DNA of 63,896 nucleotides, filler included, from Octopus bimaculoides (lineage: Eukaryota): NCBI RefSeq assembly GCF_001194135.2. It is 4 parts of 4 records of this genome, joined end to end, with 100 filler letters (N's around TTAATTAATTAA, not from the genome) between each part and the next. Parts side by side here need not be neighbours in the genome. Positions count along the whole stretch, not along the records: positions 1 to 28,083 come from NC_068992.1; 3 more parts are not named here. One strand, given 5' to 3'. Under the pieces are notes generated by a model, which was given only the letters and a program-made list of their open reading frames with translations, was not told the origin of the DNA and ran no database searches. The translations under genes and the position numbers were made by a program. The stretch's first letter is position 1; each line of letters opens with the position of its first letter. Shown in pieces: positions 13,684 to 27,164 of this stretch.

Positions 13684-14663
13684 NNNNNNNNNNNNNNNNN
13701 NNNNNNNNNNNNNNNNNNNNNNNNNNNNNNNNNNNNNNNNNNNNNNNNNNNNNNNNNNNNNNNNNNNNNNNNNNNNNNNNNNNNNNNNNNNNNNNNNNNN
13801 NNNNNNNNNNNNNNNNNNNNNNNNNNNNNNNNNNNNNNNNNNNNNNNNNNNNNNNNNNNNNNNNNNNNNNNNNNNNNNNNNNNNNNNNNNNNNNNNNNNN
13901 NNNNNNNNNNNNNNNNNNNNNNNNNNNNNNNNNNNNNNNNNNNNNNNNNNNNNNNNNNNNNNNNNNNNNNNNNNNNNNNNNNNNNNNNNNNNNNNNNNNN
14001 NNNNNNNNNNNNNNNNNNNNNNNNNNNNNNNNNNNNNNATATATATATATATATATAGTGTTATATAGAAAATTATATTGTGTTATATAGACCACTTATG
14101 ACCTGAATCACCTCCAACACCATTATTATTCAAATAGTAAATATTTTCTTTTGTTCTTTCTTTTACTTTCAGTTTGTGAAGCACGACGACCAGTGAACCT
14201 TTACCTGGGTGTTGAACACAATAGTCTTCCGAATTTATATAATTTGGGTCTTTTGAAATTTTATAAATCACTGAAATCAGAACTTAAGAGCACCAATGCT
14301 GATAAGATTCACACCCAATTAATCTTCAGTGATTTTTCAAACGAAAAAGAAAATATCAGCGAAGCATTCATCAACATCTTCAGGAAAACAATGAAAGCAG
14401 CAATTAACAATAATAAAGACTCTCAAAAGACTTTGCTGTTGTTTGTCAACTCCACCACTACTTTAACAGCAGAAATGGTCAAAGCAGCTACTATTCTGAA
14501 GGATAAAAAAATTGAGGTTTATGTTGTTGTAGAAGGTAAAAGTGAAACAGACTTTTCAAAGATTGCTAGTAAACCAGCTGAAGATCACCTCTTCATTGTG
14601 CCTTATTTCAAGAAGTTGAGTGGCCACAGGGATACAATATTACAGTCGATTTGTAAAGGTTAG
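5564..14663 (+). CDS. Probably secreted protein with two degenerate VWA domains (matrilin/collagen VI-like VWA), about 444 aa
   Basis: Hand-built join 5564-5608, 6255-6282, 10548-10613, 10842-10895, 11337-11606, 12448-12792, 13407-13442, 14173-14663 = 1335 nt. All internal exons from 10548 onward are symmetric phase 1. VWA hallmarks: C..DVMIYLDVS, VVFYFS, LYILRL, LVSSP..FVFEV; second domain VYVVV..IASKPAEDHLFIVPYFKKL..ILQSIC. The first two exons and 10842-10895 are less certain. Confidence 0.75.
6255..6282 (+). CDS. Tentative VWA gene exon 2 (MFQGSFSAS), end of signal peptide
   Basis: Strong tttcttgtgtag| acceptor and CAG|gtaaga donor; 28 nt, phase 0 to 1. Confidence 0.55.
7680..8520 (-). 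mobile_element. Chain of about four SINE copies (family B)
   Basis: Repeated body CGACCCCAGTG...CTGGTACTTAATTTATCGACCCCGAAAGGATGAAAGGCAAAGTCGACCTCGGCGGAATTTGAACTC, related to 53448-53669. Confidence 0.85.
9770..9970 (+). mobile_element. SINE family B copy with a duplicated head
   Basis: GCCGGCGAGCTGGCAGAATCGTTAGCAACG occurs twice, followed by the family B body. Confidence 0.75.
10244..10278 (+). promoter_or_regulatory. Candidate internal TATA box and Inr
   Basis: TATAAAAG at 10244-10251 with a TCAATT whose A lies 30 nt downstream (10274). Confidence 0.3.
10548..10613 (+). CDS. VWA gene exon (VPYKKAKDFENDSYVTNNPGNS)
   Basis: tttcatttcag| acceptor, CTG|gtgagt donor, 66 nt, phase 1/1. Confidence 0.7.
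10842..10895 (+). CDS. Tentative VWA gene exon (GTKEQRRLFFKTSIRNTD)
   Basis: ttaaatag| acceptor, ACG|gtacaa donor (moderate), 54 nt, phase 1/1, open frame. Confidence 0.45.
11337..11606 (+). CDS. VWA domain 1, N-terminal half
   Basis: tgtctttcag| acceptor, CCA|gtaagt donor, 270 nt; inside ORF 11300..11770. Confidence 0.9.
12448..12792 (+). CDS. VWA domain 1, C-terminal half
   Basis: ctgtttacag| acceptor, ACA|gtaagt donor, 345 nt; in frame with ORF 12522..12806. Confidence 0.9.
12945..13190 (+). mobile_element. SINE family A, 5' part
   Basis: Head GTGTGGTTAATAAGTTCGCTTCCCAACC..., then GCCTTGTGAGTGGATTTGGTAG and a (TG)n tract. Confidence 0.75.
13407..13442 (+). CDS. Inter-domain linker exon (MQVFPGYTIPKP)
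   Basis: ttcttttaatag| acceptor, CAA|gtaagt donor, 36 nt, phase 1/1. Confidence 0.8.
14173..14663 (+). CDS. VWA domain 2 exon, ending ICKG*
   Basis: ttactttcag| acceptor; ORF 14151..14663; AATAAA at 14819-14824. An AAAG|gttagt donor at 14658 overlaps the stop codon. Confidence 0.88.
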
Positions 14664-18950: not shown

Positions 18951-19059
18951 GGAGATAACTCAGTAGTATAAAGTTGGTAAATTGTGGTTGATTCAGGGGA
19001 TGTAAGTCAGGGATGGACCAGCAGCCTTTTCAACCGGTTTTGTTGAGATTGTGGTCAAC

Positions 19060-19460
19060 TCTTTTTCTTTTTCTTGTTTCAGTCATTTGACTGCGGCCAT
19101 GCTGGAGCACCGCCTTTAGTCGAGCAAATCGACCCCAGGATTTATTCTTTGTAAGCCTAGTACTTATTCTATCGATCTCTTTTGCCAAACCGCTAATGTA
19201 CGGGGACGTAAACACACCAGCATCGGTTGTCAAGCGATGTTGGGAGGGACAAACACAGACAAACATATACACACACATACATACATATATATATACATAT
19301 ATATGACGGGCTTCTTTCAGTTTCCATCTACCAAATCCACTCACAAGGCCTTGGTCAGCCCGAGGCTATAGTAGAAGACACTTGCCCAAGGTGCCACGCA
19401 GTGGGACTGAACCCGGAACCATGTGGTTGGTAAGCAAGCTACTTACCACACAGCCACTCC
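19060..19460 (-). mobile_element. SINE family A, full-length copy
   Basis: Reverse complement of 53788-54194 with high identity. Confidence 0.9.
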
Positions 19461-21146
19461 TATGCAAAACAACAACATGGAGGAACCGACGTAAACTNNN
19501 NNNNNNNNNNNNNNNNNNNNNNNNNNNNNNNNNNNNNNNNNNNNNNNNNNNNNNNNNNNNNNNNNNNNNNNNNNNNNNNNNNNNNNNNNNNNNNNNNNNN
19601 NNNNNNNNNNNNNNNNNNNNNNNNNNNNNNNNNNNNNNNNNNNNNNNNNNNNNNNNNNNNNNNNNNNNNNNNNNNNNNNNNNNNNNNNNNNNNNNNNNNN
19701 NNNNNNNNNNNNNNNNNNNNNNNNNNNNNNNNNNNNNNNNNNNNNNNNNNNNNNNNNNNNNNNNNNNNNNNNNNNNNNNNNNNNNNNNNNNNNNNNNNNN
19801 NNNNNNNNNNNNNNNNNNNNNNNNNNNNNNNNNNNNNNNNNNNNNNNNNNNNNNNNNNNNNNNNNNNNNNNNNNNNNNNNNNNNNNNNNNNNNNNNNNNN
19901 NNNNNNNNNNNNNNNNNNNNNNNNNNNNNNNNNNNNNNNNNNNNNNNNNNNNNNNNNNNNNNNNNNNTTCCGTTTTCCTATATGTTCGTTCTGTTGTCTG
20001 TAGTTTATTGTTCTAACGTCCTGTACCCTGATATGCATGTATATACACATGTAGATGTAAGTATGTACATATATGTGTGTATACATGTATATATATTCTT
20101 TGTATTATATATATATATATATATATATAATGTTAATTCTCTAAATGAAGTATTAACAGTAACTGCACGATAAAGTGTAGTATATTGCCACTTAAGTGTG
20201 GCTGACCCCTAGGGGTGGAGTGTAGGTATAGTATATATATATATATATATATATATATGCAATGAGTTTCTTTCAGTTTCTGTCTATGAAATCCACCCAC
20301 AAGGCTTTGGTAGGTTTGAGGCTATAGTACAGGACACTTGCCCAAGGTGCCACACAGTGGGACAGAACCCAGAACGACGTGGTTGGGAAACAAACCTCTT
20401 GCTGCTTCATTTCTGCTAACTAATTGCGGTTTTATGAATGGGTTCTAATTTAAGCCAAGGCCTGCAATTTTGTGAGAAAAAGCTGCATTGTAGAATGTTC
20501 TCATTGCCACCATTTATAAAAGTAATCCAGGTTTGGTATGCGGCGTCTGGGCTGCATGATGGATAGTTGAGTAAAGTTTTGGAGGAATGAAGGATCATGT
20601 TTTTTGCATAAGGGTGAGTATTGTTGGATGAGGCAGCAAGAAGAAGAACAATTTTAAAACTTTATTGAATTCCAAAACAAACTTAAGACTTTATCATTAA
20701 ATTTTTTCAACATTATCGTCAACATAATCATGAGTAATACATTTATCATTAGCATATTCATAATTTGCATTGTCATCATCAGCATAATTATTAGTCTCAT
20801 AATCATCGTTAGGAATATCCTTATTATTCATATTTATTATCAGTATAATCGTTATTAGTTGTTGTGGTTGGAGAAGTATTAAACAATTGTTTATGTTGTC
20901 TAGTTACATGGGCCATGTTTCCATGTTCAAATCCTAGTAAAGGAAGAATTGGAACATCAATTATTAATTATATTGGACCGGTTCAATTTAGTGAACTGAA
21001 AAACCTCTCTCCATGGACCTGGCAAAGTAAAATATAAAACACTGTCACAATTCTGGTTATTGTTGCTATTGTTGTAGTGACTTCTGAAAATCATTAAATG
21101 CTATCTGAAAGTTAACCAAAATGTTGAAAATCTCTCCAAGCTGAGT

Positions 21147-21296
21147 CTATGGACATTCTGGTGGTATTTGGTTCTTTTGCTCTGAACAATTGCGGGCAAT
21201 ACAATCAGCGACATGTTTCATGTCTTCATCATTTTTCACAGAAGTAAACAACAGGGATCTGTCCATTCGAGTCATTATGACATCACCTTTGAAGTC
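21147..21296 (-). CDS. ureG: UreG-like terminal coding exon 6
   Basis: tttaatgtacag| acceptor, 49 codons plus [12 protein letters not shown] resembles the UreG C-terminal PFxFTxxK segment. AATAAA on the - strand at 20833-20838 and 20661-20666. Confidence 0.88.
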   Translation of the reverse strand, partial: DFKGDVIMTRMDRSLLFTSVKNDEDMKHVADCIARNCSEQKNQIPPECP

Positions 21297-22785
21297 CTGT
21301 ACATTAAAGAAAAAGACAAATAATAATAATAATAATCCTTTCTAATATAGCCACAAGGCCTGAAATAAATTTTTCGTGGGGGTGAGGGCGGGAGGCAAGT
21401 TGATTATATTGACCCCAGTGCGCAACTGGTACTTCTTTCATTGAACCTGAAAGGATGAAAGACAAGGTCAACCTCAGTGGTATTTGAACTCAGAAGGTAA
21501 AGAGGCAAACGAAATGCCACTAAGCCTTTTATCTAACACACTATGATTCTGCCATGCAACCACCTTAATAATGATATGGAGTGGCTGTGTGGTAAGTAGC
21601 TTGCTTACCAACCACATGGTTCCGGGTTCAGTCCCACTGTGTGGTACCTTGGGCAAGTGTCTTCTACTATAGCCTCTGGCCGACCAAAGCCTTGTGATGT
21701 ATGTGTGTGTATATGTTTGTCCCTCCCAACATCGCTTGACAACCGATGCTGGTGTGTTTACGTCCCTGTAACTTAGCAGTTCGGCAAAAAGATGCCGATA
21801 GAATAAGTACTAGGCTTATAAAGAATAAGTCCTGGGGTCGATTTTCTCGACTAAAAGGCGGTGCTCCAGCATGGCCACAGTCAAATGACTGAAACAAGTA
21901 AAAGAGTAAAAGAGTATATACAGACAGGTACGTAGGCAAGCGGATTGATTAACTGGCAGACTGATTTGCTTGGTGACTGAATGGGTGGTTGTTTATAGAT
22001 TACGACAAAATCTCAATGAAAACATCTTAGAGTGATTTAAATAACAGAACTAACTCTTAAAGTTTCATATACCTACCTCCATATCAAAATCCATTGCTTT
22101 TTCCAAATCCATTTTATTGACTACAAGTAACTCGCAGTAATCATTACCTGCTATTCGTTTCTTGATGATGTTTCTGCCACCTAGAAAACAGAAATTATCG
22201 TTATTATTAACATTATTATTGAGTGAGAGAGCAGTGCATGCCAAATATACAAAGCCCAGTCATGACTCACCAGGACTACCTGTGTGATAAGGGTACACCA
22301 GGCACATGCATCACAACCATATGTGCATGACACAATGACCTCAAATCAAGATAAACATCCCATGACCTTGCAGGTGGAGGTCCAGTTAGAATTTTCTTCA
22401 TGTCAAGTAGCCTATCCTGCTCAAAAAGGGTTATTTTAGGATGATGAATGAAACATCCATGTTACCAGTGGTGAATTGTTCAAACCCTATAGAATTGCTC
22501 TCCCACTACTTCTGCTCATGATCAGAGATGCACATATCATCAGCCACCAAGGGACATACTCAACTGGTTAAGATGAAGCAACTGACAAGCAAATCTGTGG
22601 TATTGAACAGAATATTTGCTGTAACCCATCTTTTAGACCAAGACAAAACGTGTACATGATTACACTTCCAATCAGTTAAGATCAAAAGCTTTGAGAGCCA
22701 CTGTCTTGTATTGCATCAGGGCATTATTATTAATTCCCACAAATTCCAGGTCTTGTATCTATAGTAGAAAGGATTATTATTATTA

Positions 22786-22834
<49 letters not shown>

Positions 22835-23851
22835 CATACTTTTTGGTTTTGGTGAGGTGGTATTGCTACATACTTTGATAACCTCTACCACTTTGATCTG
22901 TATTTTCATGCAGATTTATGTCATAAAATTATGGCCAGTCATACATGCTCATATCAGTAATAAGAATTATGATATCTTCATATTAATCATAATGGATACA
23001 AAGATATCTCATGTTTTCAAACATGGATTTAAGGATCAATTGTAATAAATATTTACAACATAAATAAATAATTGATAAAAACTAAAAACAAAAATTGGAC
23101 GAGAATCAAACCTGCAATGTCGATGACTAAAATGGTATAATCCACCAAATCTCTGTTAAAATGTGCTGCAAGACAATCCCCAGCAGATTCTAACAGAATT
23201 ATTTCAGGTTGAAAGAGTTTGGTCAAGTCTTTGATTTCTTTCAGATTTACATCAATATTCTATATATAAGAAAAAAAAAAAAAAAAAAAAAAAANNNNNN
23301 NNNNNNNNNNNNNNNNNNNNNNNNNNNNNNNNNNNNNNNNNNNNNNNNNNNNNNNNNNNNNNNNNNNNNNNNNNNNNNNNNNNNNNNNNNNNNNNNNNNN
23401 NNNNNNNNNNNNNNNNNNNNNNNNNNNNNNNNNNNNNNNNNNNNNNNNNNNNNNNNNNNNNNNNNNNNNNNNNNNNNNNNNNNNNNNNNNNNNNNNNNNN
23501 NNNNNNNTTTGAAAGTATGGGAATGATGATGATGATGGCGGTGGTGGTGGTGGTGGTGGGTAATGGTAGTGGTGATGATGATGATGATGATAACAGCAAT
23601 GAGATATACAATGTAAAAATTCTTTAAACAGATATATTTTATAAAGGAATCATTTACTTAATCATTTACTAATTAATCAAATCCACCCACACAATGAACC
23701 TGGGCCCATATCAGCTCGAAAAATTACTAATCTATATTGCTTTCTTTTAATCTTTTTTACTTGTTTCAGTCATTGGACTGCGGTCATGCTGGAGCACTAC
23801 TTTGAAGGATTTTCGTCAAATGAATCGACACCAATGCTTATTTTTAAGCTT

Positions 23852-23887
<36 letters not shown>

Positions 23888-26800
23888 CAATTTATTTTTG
23901 CCAAGCAGCTAAGTTATAGGGGACATAAACAAACCATCACCAGTTGTCAAACAGTAGTAGGGGATAAACACACACACATATGTACATATATACATATATT
24001 ATATAATACACACATACAAACACACACACATATATATAACTAATTTAGAGACGAACCACCATTCCACAACTCAGTCAATGAAGAACCTGTCCAAAATCAT
24101 GTTGTGAGACATCTACCATACAAAATACTAATCGAAAATTTTAATAATATATAATATTAAACAGTAAAATTATTATAAACATATAATGTATAAGGGCAAA
24201 TATTTTAAAAATCACAGCGAATACCATACAAAGAAACATTCATCATAAAAATATTAATTTAAAAATCAAATAAAATATCAATTAAACAATAAAAATTAAT
24301 ACAATAATATAATGTATAAAAGTACTTAAAGATGGACAAAAAGTACATAAAAGTACATAAAGATGGACAAAACGCTGCTAAGTATTTTGACGCCACCTTA
24401 ATAGTAATATTAATAATAGGATAGAAAAAGAAATACAAGTAAAAAAAAACACAACATTACTTTATTCGTGACTTCCAATGGACAACTTTCTGTTATGACA
24501 GAACGAACTTTCTCTTTTGGGATAGCATTTTGTTCAATCAAGATGTCAGCATCAACACTGAAGAATAAATGTGTATATTTATATAATAATAACAATAATA
24601 ATAATAATGAAATTATTGTGTATAGTGCTCAGGTGCACTGCAACTCATCAACGTATACAATACATAGAATTATGTACAAAAGTCAGGAAAGTGAACTGTG
24701 TATGAGACGTGATATATGTGTGCATGCGTATGAAGGTGGGGATACATCAGGTGTAGTGTTGGCGAATTTCAGGAAGCATGGAGGTTTTAAAGAATGCAAT
24801 GTCTCAGCAACTAACAACTGATGCAGATAGTTTGTTCCATGCTTCAGCAACTCTGAGTGTGGAAAAATGTTTCCGAAAGTCATTGGAGCTGTGCTTTTTT
24901 CTGACTTTGTAGGCATGCCCACATGTGTGTTAGACACATGGAGCTTAAAAAGGTGCTGAAGGTGGTTGTTGGTATGACGGTTAATAATTTTGTAGATGTT
25001 TACCAAGTCAGTTGCCAGGCGTCGGAGCTTCAATGTATCCATGCCCAGGGAAGCAAGGCATTCAGAGTTTGGTAGATGCCTGATGGAAGGTATTTGCTTG
25101 GTTGCACATCTCTGAACAGTTTCCAGGAGGTCAATGTTCTGAGCAAGATAGGGGTTCCAGACTGGTGATACAAATTCCAAGTGTGGCTGCACCATAATCA
25201 TATACAACCTTAAAAAGATAGCTGGAGAGCGGCTGACAAAGGTCTTGCTGAGTGATGCCAAGATACCCTTGGCCTTCTTGATAATTTTAGAGATGTGCTT
25301 CGTCCAGCACACATCGCTACTGACTGTTCACAAGAAGACTTTTTGATATTAGTTTTGTGGAGAGAGTACAGATGACTGTATCACCCTCTACCATCCTTTT
25401 TGTTCCCAGTACCAACATAAAAGTTTCCATTGCCTTGCAAGGGGTAGTTCCACCCAGTTTGAGAAAGTCTGTATTAGAGAATGTCCATAGGCAACCTACA
25501 TCTATTAAAAACACAGACTGCTTTGTTGTATTAATAATTCTAAAGTAATTGCAAAGTTATCTTTCTAAAACACTACTCACGTGCTGTAGAAATCATTGGT
25601 TACAACACAGATATTGCGATCTTTCAGAATCTTACACACAGCAAGGATAATGGAGGTTTTCCCTGAGCCAACTGGACCATGAATGCCCACTGTAAATGCT
25701 CGCTGAAATAGAACATAAGTTATTTTATACAATTTTGCTTTACTTTTTTGTTTGGGGAAAAACAATATCAATTACAGTTACTATGGGTTTCAGGCGGTGG
25801 GGTAGTGAAGAAGACCACAGATTTATAGTTGTCATTGTTTCAGGTGGTGGAATAGTGAGGAGGACCAGTCCACCTTAAGATATAGGGATACTGGCACATC
25901 GTTTGGTAGTCCCTGGCAACTGTTTGGTAGTCCCTGGCAACTGTTTGGTAGTCCCTGGCAACTGTTTGGTAGTCCCACAGATGTAGAGAGCCACTGCTAA
26001 TCTGTATTATGGTTGTATATGAATGAACCCTAAAGGATTGCTTTACCTGGGGGGCTTATAATGCTGTTATGATGGCCCTAGGAGAGACTTATAACTATAT
26101 TTGCTCTCATTTCACTTAGCGCAACAGTGAGGAAAACTACCAACCAAACAATTGTGAGATCAAGCCCTGCAGTTACATTGCAGTTGTTGTTGTTGCTGAG
26201 ATAATTGTTACTAAATCACAAGAATGTATAGATACAATGTTCAGTTTTGGTTTCTATATATCAAGGATATGAGAAGTGCCAATTTCACTGGATGGGCTTA
26301 CAACAAAAAAAAAAAAGGAAAATTAAATAAATTCATTTATTTGGAAATTAAAGTTATTTAAATCTACTTAAAACTCCCTGATGAATTAAAGGTTGTTGAC
26401 TCAGGTCACCACCACCATCAAATGTTTACTAGTATTCTGTATTTTATCTTATTTCACTAATAAATATCTTATCGGTCTGTTGCTGGTAGATTTCTTGTGA
26501 TGTGTGGAATTGAATTCAGAAATGCCAAACATTGAAATACTTGTAGTAAAGATTGTCTGCCAACATAACATGGCAGTCCTGGTTTAGGACTAATGTTGCT
26601 GTAATTTAGCCCCAGGAGACACTAAGTTATGGGGACATAAACACACCAGCACCAGTTGTCAAACAGTAGTGGGGGGCAAACACAAACACAAAGATACACA
26701 CACATATAAACAGACATATATATATGATGAGCTTCTATCAGTTTCCATCTACCAAATCCACTCTCAAGGTTTTGGTCGACCTCGGACTATAGTAGAAGAC

Positions 26801-27036
26801 ACTTGCCCAAGGTGCCTTGCAGTGGGACTGAACCTGGAACCATGTGGGTGGGAAGCAAGCTTCTTACCACACAGCCACACCTTCTCTTCCAGAGGAAAGT
26901 GTGTGAAGAGTGATAAATAGAAATAGAGAAATAGTAATGTAAAAGATATCAAGAACATTTTGAATTGTGTTAGGATCCTTACTTCATTCCAGTTGGTTCG
27001 GTAGAAATTCTGGCCTGGAATTCTTCTGCATGCCAT
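21147..27036 (-). CDS. ureG: UreG-like G3E/SIMIBI P-loop GTPase (divergent urease accessory protein G), spliced, 224 aa
   Basis: Hand-built join(complement) 26983-27036, 25581-25702, 24461-24557, 23112-23259, 22077-22180, 21147-21296 = 675 nt, all GT-AG, phases 0/2/0/1/0. Protein: [224 protein letters not shown]. Motif order matches eukaryotic UreG (RAFTVGIGGPVGxGKT, TND, ESGGDNL, NKxD). Confidence 0.92.
21335..21565 (-). mobile_element. SINE family B copy in UreG-like intron 5
   Basis: GACCCCAGTGCGCAACTGGTAC...GGATGAAAGACAAGGTCAACCTC body preceded by (AAT)n. Confidence 0.8.
21578..21914 (+). mobile_element. SINE family A copy with internal deletion, in UreG-like intron 5
   Basis: GGAGTGGCTGTGTGGTAAGTAGC head through the ACAAGTAAAAGAGTAAAAGAG tail. 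Confidence 0.9.
22077..22180 (-). CDS. ureG: UreG-like coding exon 5 (NKMD, G4 motif)
   Basis: tctgttttctag| acceptor, GAG|gtaggt donor, 104 nt, phase 1 to 0. Confidence 0.92.
22774..22815. repeat. (TTA)n repeat in UreG-like intron 4
   Basis: Direct reading. Confidence 0.95.
23112..23259 (-). CDS. ureG: UreG-like coding exon 4 (ESAGDCL, Walker B region)
   Basis: ttcttatatatag| acceptor, GCAG|gtttga donor, 148 nt, phase 0 to 1; absent from the ORF track. Confidence 0.92.
23745..24040 (-). mobile_element. SINE family A, 3' part, in UreG-like intron 3
   Basis: TTTTACTTGTTTCAGTCATTGGACTGCGGTCATGCTGGAGCAC matches the family tail. Confidence 0.8.
24461..24557 (-). CDS. ureG: UreG-like coding exon 3 (contains ITESCPL)
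   Basis: attcttcag| acceptor, |gtaatg donor, 97 nt, phase 2 to 0; inside ORF 24410..24595. Confidence 0.92.
24590..25560 (-). mobile_element. CR1/L2-type LINE 3' fragment in UreG-like intron 2
   Basis: ORF 24683..25312 [37 protein letters not shown]...L..LKLRRL..DL..IYKII is the typical post-RT C-terminus; (TTA)n tail near 24590. Confidence 0.88.
25581..25702 (-). CDS. ureG: UreG-like coding exon 2 (P-loop [11 protein letters not shown])
   Basis: ctatttcag| acceptor, |gtgagt donor, 122 nt; inside ORF 25577..25771. Confidence 0.95.
25901..25976. repeat. 21-bp minisatellite, 3.6 copies
   Basis: Unit GTTTGGTAGTCCCTGGCAACT at 25901, 25922 and 25943, plus a partial copy at 25964. Confidence 0.95.
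26610..26880 (-). mobile_element. SINE family A, 5' two-thirds, in UreG-like intron 1
   Basis: TCAGTTTCCATCTACCAAATCCACTC...GACACTTGCCCAAGGTGCC...CCACACAGCCAC. Confidence 0.85.
26983..27036 (-). CDS. ureG: UreG-like coding exon 1 ([18 protein letters not shown])
   Basis: ATG in ATAATAATGG context; GAA|gtaagg donor, phase 0; acceptor tttttttag at 27060 gives 23 nt of leader. Aligns with the plant/fungal segment just before RAFTVG. Confidence 0.8.
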
Positions 27037-27086: not shown

Positions 27087-27147
<61 letters not shown>

Positions 27148-27164
27148 AAGAGAGAGATAATGTC

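Follow-up and report, generated by a model that had tools for sequence, protein, structure and literature searches.

A UreG-like GTPase of octopuses and other coleoid cephalopods with an altered nickel-binding motif

The DNA analysed here, a stretch of 63,896 nucleotides from Octopus bimaculoides (assembly GCF_001194135.2; referred to as the window, with positions 1 to 28,083 from NC_068992.1), is animal DNA rich in AT and in repeats and interrupted by several N gaps, and its minus strand carries a gene for a UreG-like protein in six coding exons running from 27036 to 21147. UreG is among the most conserved metallochaperones, the scallop and fungal proteins being ∼65-70% identical and the CPH of the nickel motif invariant. 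The orthologues of octopuses, argonauts, cuttlefish and squids keep the GTPase core and have replaced the histidine of that motif, together with much of its surroundings. Based on the collective evidence, the gene is best understood, on balance, as encoding a UreG-derived GTPase that was released from canonical nickel delivery and has been maintained for another role. In the literature that could be searched, we came across no account of this divergence.

Gene structure and descent

Exons 2 to 5 were located with H. pylori UreG as tblastn probe, followed by reading of the minus strand frame by frame, and the first and last coding exons were added with the closest database relative as guide (Table 1). 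The first-pass annotation had assigned the protein to 22077-25702, which holds exons 2 to 5 and falls short of the gene at both ends. The complete coding sequence of 675 nt specifies 224 amino acids and a stop, and its five introns are all GT..AG with the AG behind a pyrimidine tract, in agreement with the open frame, lacking stops and frameshifts, that had been claimed. The earlier count of nine cysteines is true of the full protein, five of them lying in exons 2 to 5. An exact-sequence look-up returns XP_014773062.1, 'urease accessory protein UreG [Octopus bimaculoides]'; the gene is thus already annotated in RefSeq, on homology alone.

Table 1. Features of the UreG-like gene and of its surroundings, in positions of the window
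Feature	Position	Strand	Location	Remark
Coding exon 1	26983..27036	minus		short, without His-rich segment; gtaagg donor; aligns to canonical UreG '...PLYRTDWNE'
Coding exon 2	25581..25702	minus		P-loop and TND; ends in phase 2
Coding exon 3	24461..24557	minus		97 nt; reads VDADIL...; CPL instead of CPH
Coding exon 4	23112..23259	minus		148 nt; G3/switch II ESAGDCL
Coding exon 5	22077..22180	minus		remodelled loop and G4 NKMD
Coding exon 6	21147..21296	minus		ends NQIPPECP and stop; Cys223 at 21153-21155
P-loop (G1) GPVGSGKT	25655-25678	minus	exon 2	
TND (G2)	25592-25600	minus	exon 2	
STVDA (for TxEDA)		minus	exon 2/3 junction	phase 2
ITESCPL (for ETGGCPH)	CPL = 24476-24484	minus	exon 3	
ESAGDCL (for ESGGDNL)	23170-23190	minus	exon 4	
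Altered loop (for GDKIPRKGGPG)	22146-22178	minus	exon 5	
NKMD (G4)	22107-22118	minus	exon 5	
Assembly gap (N)	23295..23507		intron 3	wholly within the intron (23260-24460)
209-aa open reading frame	24683-25312	minus	intron 2	no Pfam match
VWA-domain open reading frames	12522-12806; 14151-14663; possibly 11300-11770	plus		E = 7e-4 and 3e-6 (first two)
∼340-bp interspersed repeat	21578-21915		downstream of gene, introns 1 and 3	copies at 19058-19460, 26622-26881, 20298-20393, 23743-23987, 3606-3662
(GA)35 microsatellite	27088-27157			∼50 nt upstream of the start-codon exon
Perfect 21-bp tandem repeat, x3.6	25901-25976		intron 1	unit GTTTGGTAGTCCCTGGCAACT
(ATT)20 repeat	22773-22834		intron 4	

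The assembly gap inside the gene raises the possibility of an artefact, whether a model mis-joined across the gap, an assembly error at CPH or contamination, but such an explanation is refuted on every count. The gap is intronic, and the exons that flank it have ancestral lengths and phases: the junction of exons 3 and 4 is in phase 0, the acceptor of exon 4 (poly-T and tatatag) lies 36 nt past the gap, and the 97- and 148-nt exons recur at the same length where UreG is canonical, in Pecten, the chiton Liolophura, Lottia and Capitella. Because lengths and phases of exons 3 and 4 match those of the relatives, no coding sequence is hidden in the gap. Exon lengths over the whole gene are the same in O. 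bimaculoides and O. sinensis (54, 122, 97, 148, 104 and 150 nt) and nearly so in the orthologue of Sepia pharaonis (48, 125, 97, 148, 104 and 150 nt). An assembly error at CPL, which the first-pass annotation had named as a possible objection, is excluded by the independent assemblies of O. sinensis and O. vulgaris, both of which read CPL, and bacterial contamination is excluded by the animal-type intron positions. In Argonauta hians, exons 3 and 4 are fused into one 236-nt exon (97 + 148 - 9; L013:11736-11972), intron 3 having been lost along with a 3-codon deletion directly after the CPx motif.

Family membership and descent are clear. The protein matches PF02492 (CobW/HypB/UreG; E = 4e-19 in Pfam), the P-loop, Glu-type Walker B (ExxG) and NKxD of G3E GTPases can be read in its sequence, and its AlphaFold2 (AF2) model, of the SIMIBI fold, matches UreG, HypB and MeaB structures. 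The best NCBIfam model is ureG TIGR00101 (138.7 bits, 1e-40 to 1e-45), with hypB at 44.8 bits. Four coleoid proteins score 138-154 bits on TIGR00101, below the equivalog cut-off of 204.2, compared to 260-265 bits for the UreGs of Pecten, a chiton and Capitella; hypB TIGR00073 gives the coleoid proteins 45-58 bits against a cut-off of 121 and hence does not claim them. H. pylori and Klebsiella UreG (4hi0, 5xkt) are the best sequence matches in the PDB. The full-length AF2 model (predicted local distance difference test, pLDDT, 86; predicted TM-score, pTM, 0.87), which replaced a run on a 158-aa partial protein with pLDDT 73, superimposes on 5XKT and 4HI0 with target-normalised TM of 0.92 and 0.90 and a root-mean-square deviation of 1.5-1.9 Å, HypB coming next. 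Pecten, Liolophura, Lottia and Capitella have their canonical UreG introns at the same five positions and in the same phases (0, 2, 0, 1, 0), and canonical lophotrochozoan UreG genes also share the lengths of the 97-, 148- and 104-nt exons. The gene is a vertically inherited animal UreG orthologue, since intron positions and phases that match animal UreG are those of vertical descent and of neither a horizontal acquisition nor a contaminant. The coleoid proteins share ∼41-45% identity with the canonical UreGs of molluscs and annelids, compared to ∼80% among those canonical proteins even between phyla, and the coleoid family forms one isolated cluster at 434 bits, the next match among 1.84 billion cluster representatives scoring 197 bits.

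Conserved positions lost and kept

The motif readings of the first-pass annotation (ITESCPL, STVDA, ESAGDCL, an altered loop, an intact G1 and NKMD) are all present on the minus strand, and their weight becomes apparent from an alignment of 207 canonical UreGs of bacteria, fungi and animals with six coleoid sequences, to which the H. pylori numbering used here refers. C66, P67 and H68 are each 100% conserved among the 207, so that the near-invariance earlier ascribed to the nickel motif holds without exception for CPH. Across the six coleoid sequences it reads CPL, CPL, CPA, CPM, CPM and CPM: in place of the histidine, Octopus has Leu, Argonauta has Ala, and cuttlefish and squid have Met. The question whether CPL is fixed thus receives a divided answer: it is shared by O. 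bimaculoides, O. sinensis and O. vulgaris (the latter two 90% identical to the first), and it gives way to CPA in Argonauta hians (78% over full length) and to CPM both in Sepia (Acanthosepion) pharaonis with its closely related transcripts (63%) and in the decapodiform family P0002 (63%).

Among the 91 positions at least 95% conserved in canonical UreGs, the coleoids keep 42 in all six sequences, change 26 in all six and are mixed at 23. The 42 kept positions cover every GTPase motif and include the whole P-loop, T35-N36-D37, D43, C66, P67, E98, S99, G101, D102, N145, K146 and D148. The changes fall in four clusters, near the metal loop (E62, G64, H68, A70, I71 and E73), in switch II (G100A and N103C), in the 126-137 loop (D126, P129I, G132R, G133I, P134 and T137) and in the C-terminal third. 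At 12 of the 26 changed positions all six sequences have adopted the same single new residue, G64E, G132R and G133I among them. The new cysteine noted earlier in GDC is Cys120, which takes the place of the near-invariant Asn103 and is fixed in all six sequences; the C-terminal Cys223 is equally conserved (six of six). The first-pass annotation missed a further loss, that of the His-rich N-terminal exon: none of the six coleoid proteins has the His-rich segment of canonical animal UreGs (HSHGHEHGHTHE...), which other molluscs' UreG genes encode further 5'. That the N-terminus is truly short follows from decapod mRNA contigs, in which in-frame stops precede the ATG.

What these residues do is known from the bacterial proteins. 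In H. pylori UreG, one Ni sits at the interface of the GTP-dependent dimer, bound by Cys66 and His68 of both protomers, and either mutation, C66A or H68A, does away with dimerisation and with most of the nickel binding (PMC3792862); together with the invariance of His68 among the 207 canonical proteins, this supports the earlier proposal that the coleoid protein cannot use the canonical nickel site. Hydrogen bonds and salt bridges to UreF involve E62, G64, D74, S76, N109, E111, R130, K131 and R138 (PMC3792862, Table S2), whereas contacts to UreE and its nickel are made by Y39, G65, H68 and D74 (bioRxiv 10.64898/2025.12.08.692910). Of these, E62, G64 and H68 are gone in all six coleoid sequences; G65 is altered in O. 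bimaculoides and P0002 only, and D74 only in the three octopods. D37, E42 and D43 form GTP-dependent salt bridges to R130 and K131 of the other protomer, and analysis of D37A/E42A showed Glu42 to be required for GTP-dependent dimerisation of H. pylori UreG (bioRxiv 10.64898/2025.12.08.692910). The coleoid proteins retain D37, D43 and, largely, the basic pair at 130/131. For Asn103 and Asp126, no residue-level contacts were found in the paper on the UreDFG tunnel. From the residues lost and kept, it appears that the nickel hand-over apparatus has been dismantled while the nucleotide core and part of the dimer contacts persist.

An unusable canonical site is distinct from an inability to bind nickel, because the sister GTPase HypB binds the metal with four cysteines. 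In H. pylori HypB, Ni(II) is held across the dimer by C106 and C142 of each protomer, and in M. jannaschii HypB Zn is bound by Cys95, Cys127 and His96 (PMC7055735). C106 and C95 align with coleoid Cys84, the retained cysteine of the former CPH loop, whereas C142 and C127 align two residues after Cys120. The coleoid protein could accordingly be a urease maturation factor still, with a rebuilt, cysteine-only nickel site of Cys84 and Cys120 from each protomer, co-evolved with a divergent urease, UreD and UreF. The retention of Cys66 and Pro67 in six of six coleoids, the fixed switch II cysteine, the largely retained basic pair and the RefSeq name are all in its favour. We nevertheless consider it unlikely, given that the His-rich N-terminus carried by eukaryotic UreGs is lost, that contacts to UreF are altered (E62 and G64 throughout, D74 only in the three octopods), that the replacement of the histidine varies between Leu, Ala and Met, that the TIGR00101 scores lie below the cut-off and far from those of canonical lophotrochozoan proteins, and that the ancestral head-to-head position yielded no urease exon (see below).

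Constraint, urease context and a proposed role

Deep comparisons show the coleoid protein to be under purifying selection. Neither reading frames nor splice sites are disrupted in three Octopus species, Argonauta, Sepia or a further decapod, 6-7 coleoid species in total. The ratio of nonsynonymous to synonymous differences per site (pN/pS) is 0.21-0.22 between Octopus and Argonauta (binomial p about 1e-19 to 1e-21), 0.28 between Sepia and P0002 (p 1e-10) and 0.22 between Sepia and P0003 (p = 0.014), and the corresponding NG86 estimates of dN/dS are 0.12-0.22 for the three pairs. Expression is documented for decapods: an uninterrupted coding sequence of P0002 lies on contigs of ∼1.7 kb from at least 24 RNA-seq assemblies, P0003 is present in six assemblies, and close relatives within its cluster account for dozens of further contigs. 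The contigs are intronless, one decapod mRNA contig ending in poly(A). These observations support the idea, already put forward in the first-pass annotation, of a GTPase that is probably maintained.

The coleoid crown is ∼270 million years old, and cephalopods split from the other molluscs more than 520 million years ago. With dN of 0.15-0.17 among canonical UreGs of a bivalve, a chiton, a gastropod and an annelid, compared to 0.28 between octopus and cuttlefish and 0.48-0.58 between coleoid and canonical proteins, the coleoid protein evolves, on these dates, roughly threefold faster than canonical UreG, and the stem branch faster still. This is the pattern expected when an ancestral constraint is released and a new one is then set.

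A second, canonical copy in coleoids is unlikely, because no named cephalopod occurs among the 120 best matches listed for scallop UreG, which extend down to fungi at 65% identity and span bivalves, gastropods, a chiton, a brachiopod, annelids, echinoderms, hemichordates, amphioxus, cnidarians, chelicerates, tardigrades and fungi. In Pecten, Liolophura and Capitella, urease lies head-to-head with UreG, 5.5-9 kb upstream (L017:1-4514, L018:1-4217 and L020:1-743, all on the minus strand, with UreG beginning at 10001), and codes for 857 aa in Pecten and 837 aa in Capitella, exon 1 starting MKLSPRE.... The arrangement is a bidirectional gene pair that is conserved among Lophotrochozoa. In Argonauta, O. 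sinensis and Sepia, the 10 kb upstream of the UreG-like gene contain no detectable urease exon 1, nor was one detected anywhere in the window, and its absence from the ancestral position hints at the loss of urease in coleoids. The '522-aa gene' upstream in Argonauta consists of low-complexity open reading frames with nothing recognisable. A search for cephalopod urease with the 127-aa N-terminal peptide of the Capitella enzyme listed 120 matches, almost all of them bacterial or gamma/beta-subunit sequences, with the Capitella urease itself not among them. Literature searches on urease and UreG in cephalopods, molluscs and metazoa brought up nothing relevant, the two mentions retrieved being generic or concerned with urease as an assay reagent.

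We suggest the following course of events. In the coleoid stem, UreG evolved far faster than its canonical counterparts and lost what equips it as a nickel chaperone of urease: the histidine of CPH, the His-rich exon at the N-terminus, from the surroundings of the metal loop Glu62, Gly64 and the 'AAIRED' segment, and the GDKxPRKGGPG loop, which in UreG touches both UreF and the other protomer. Retained were Cys66 and the core of a G3E GTPase (P-loop, TND, Asp43, ExxGD and NKxD), and purifying selection afterwards acted on the new state, including the switch II cysteine, the C-terminal cysteine, G64E, G132R and G133I. Most likely, GTP binding and cycling through nucleotide states persist in the protein, probably in dimeric form, and hydrolysis is probable. 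The square-planar Cys2His2 nickel site would no longer form, precluding canonical urease maturation and docking to UreF and UreE, and the protein may act on a different client or metal, with Cys84, Cys120 and Cys223 as candidate ligands of a putative thiolate-only site. A new kind of G3E metallochaperone, in which Cys84 and Cys120 (perhaps also Cys223, and Met86 too in decapods) build a nucleotide-switched, dimer-bridging thiolate-only site in the service of a non-urease client, is a doubtful elaboration. Such a site would suit a soft metal or a cluster, that is, Zn, Cu(I) or Fe-S as in NifH-type SIMIBI proteins, and the conversion may date from the stem lineage that internalised its shell.

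Several points weigh against release from nickel delivery followed by maintenance in another role. Glu42 is Val or Ile in the octopods and in decapod P0002, which makes dimerisation of the coleoid protein uncertain. Retention of Cys66, seen together with the all-cysteine nickel site of HypB, leaves some role in nickel handling conceivable. The synteny argument is weakened by the Lottia UreG locus, which has no urease within 10 kb, so that the gene pair is not universal among molluscs, and by the fact that 10 kb is short relative to cephalopod intergenic distances. Within Octopus, pN/pS is 0.43-0.6 and borderline against 1 (for 0.43, path counting gives p = 0.019 and a cruder count p = 0.16); on the O. 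bimaculoides branch, 10 nonsynonymous codon changes, mostly conservative, face 1 synonymous change; and no exact-match transcripts of the Octopus protein are on record. The last three points, along with an evolutionary rate several-fold that of canonical UreG, are also what one would look for in a relic that decays slowly after loss of urease, under relaxed constraint and on its way to a pseudogene at least in Octopus. Slow decay is disfavoured by the deep purifying selection (pN/pS 0.21-0.28, p < 1e-9 for Octopus-Argonauta and Sepia-P0002) and by the replacement of twelve near-invariant positions with one fixed new residue each; frames and splice sites that stayed intact over the crown divergence and decapod mRNAs in assemblies of many sequencing runs speak against it likewise, and we regard it as improbable.

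Having shed the nickel ligands and yet remained intact and under selection since octopus and squid diverged, the coleoid orthologue can serve as a natural experiment in the retargeting of G3E GTPases. For cephalopods, the RefSeq name 'urease accessory protein UreG' transfers more function than is warranted. Should coleoids lack urease, theirs would be an 'orphan' among accessory proteins that has taken on new work; should they possess it, urease maturation would be possible without the Cys2His2 site.

Neighbouring features and comparison with known systems

The gene and its surroundings contain several repeats (Table 1). The 209-aa open reading frame of intron 2, which we take to resemble the C-terminal region of ORF2 proteins of retrotransposons lacking long terminal repeats, is probably a fragment of a long interspersed nuclear element in the same orientation as the gene, and the ∼340-bp repeat, of which the 31-kb locus of O. 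sinensis (L014) has more than 15 copies, is probably akin to short interspersed nuclear elements; ARAGORN detects no tRNA genes in the window, this repeat included. The open reading frames that match the von Willebrand factor type A (VWA) domain are probably exons of a neighbour gene convergent with the UreG-like gene. In O. vulgaris, the orthologue (P0130) makes up the C-terminal 215 residues of an annotated fusion model of 1261 aa. Eight 'hypothetical proteins' of this species (P0122-P0129, 274-301 aa) considered as paralogues were rejected as unrelated at 14-17% identity; they are repeat-encoded, come from different chromosomes and share the 90% cluster of the octopus UreG-like protein, a membership that is an annotation and clustering artefact, probably arising through the fused model.

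Among known systems, the coleoid protein is most like UreG (TIGR00101; 4HI0, 5XKT), its direct ancestor, with which it shares intron positions, the fold, the G1-G4 motifs and the Cys-Pro of the metal loop. It nevertheless departs from UreG in the three features by which UreG is recognised, with His68 replaced by Leu, Ala or Met, no His-rich N-terminus and a score below the equivalog cut-off, and is further changed at E62, G64, A70, I71, E73, G100, N103, D126, P129, G132-P134 and T137. HypB (4LPS, 2HF8), the sister G3E GTPase, is second-best by sequence and fold. One cysteine of its bridging metal site is equivalent to coleoid Cys84, and a further cysteine just after G3 has a coleoid counterpart, but Cys120 lies two residues before HypB Cys142/Cys127, the CH dipeptide is missing (C-P-L, and ESAGDCLA compared to ENVGNLxC), identity is 18-24%, and the coleoid protein derives from UreG, not from HypB. 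The animal G3E GTPases MMAA (MeaB) and the CobW/COG0523 zinc chaperones, as P-loop proteins that serve metallocofactor enzymes as nucleotide-dependent chaperones or gatekeepers, offer precedents for clients other than nickel enzymes; they are, however, distant (MMAA 2www, E = 0.0085; MeaB in Pfam, E = 0.2) and of other domain architecture, and CxCC or other signature motifs of the CobW/MMAA type are absent from the coleoid protein.

Comparable cases are found in chytrid fungi, whose UreG-like PF02492 proteins (Entophlyctis P0403, Chytriomyces P0435 and Synchytrium P0352) are likewise derived from UreG and have altered metal loops. Two of them lack CPH, reading TTGMWGR and TTGIWSR for ETGGCPH, whereas Synchytrium retains it but has EACGDNM in switch II. 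The chytrid proteins represent independent lineages with other replacement residues and no GDC cysteine, and two of the three (697 and 433 aa) have long N-terminal extensions. Given their existence, UreG-like proteins without CPH are rare, though not unique to coleoids.

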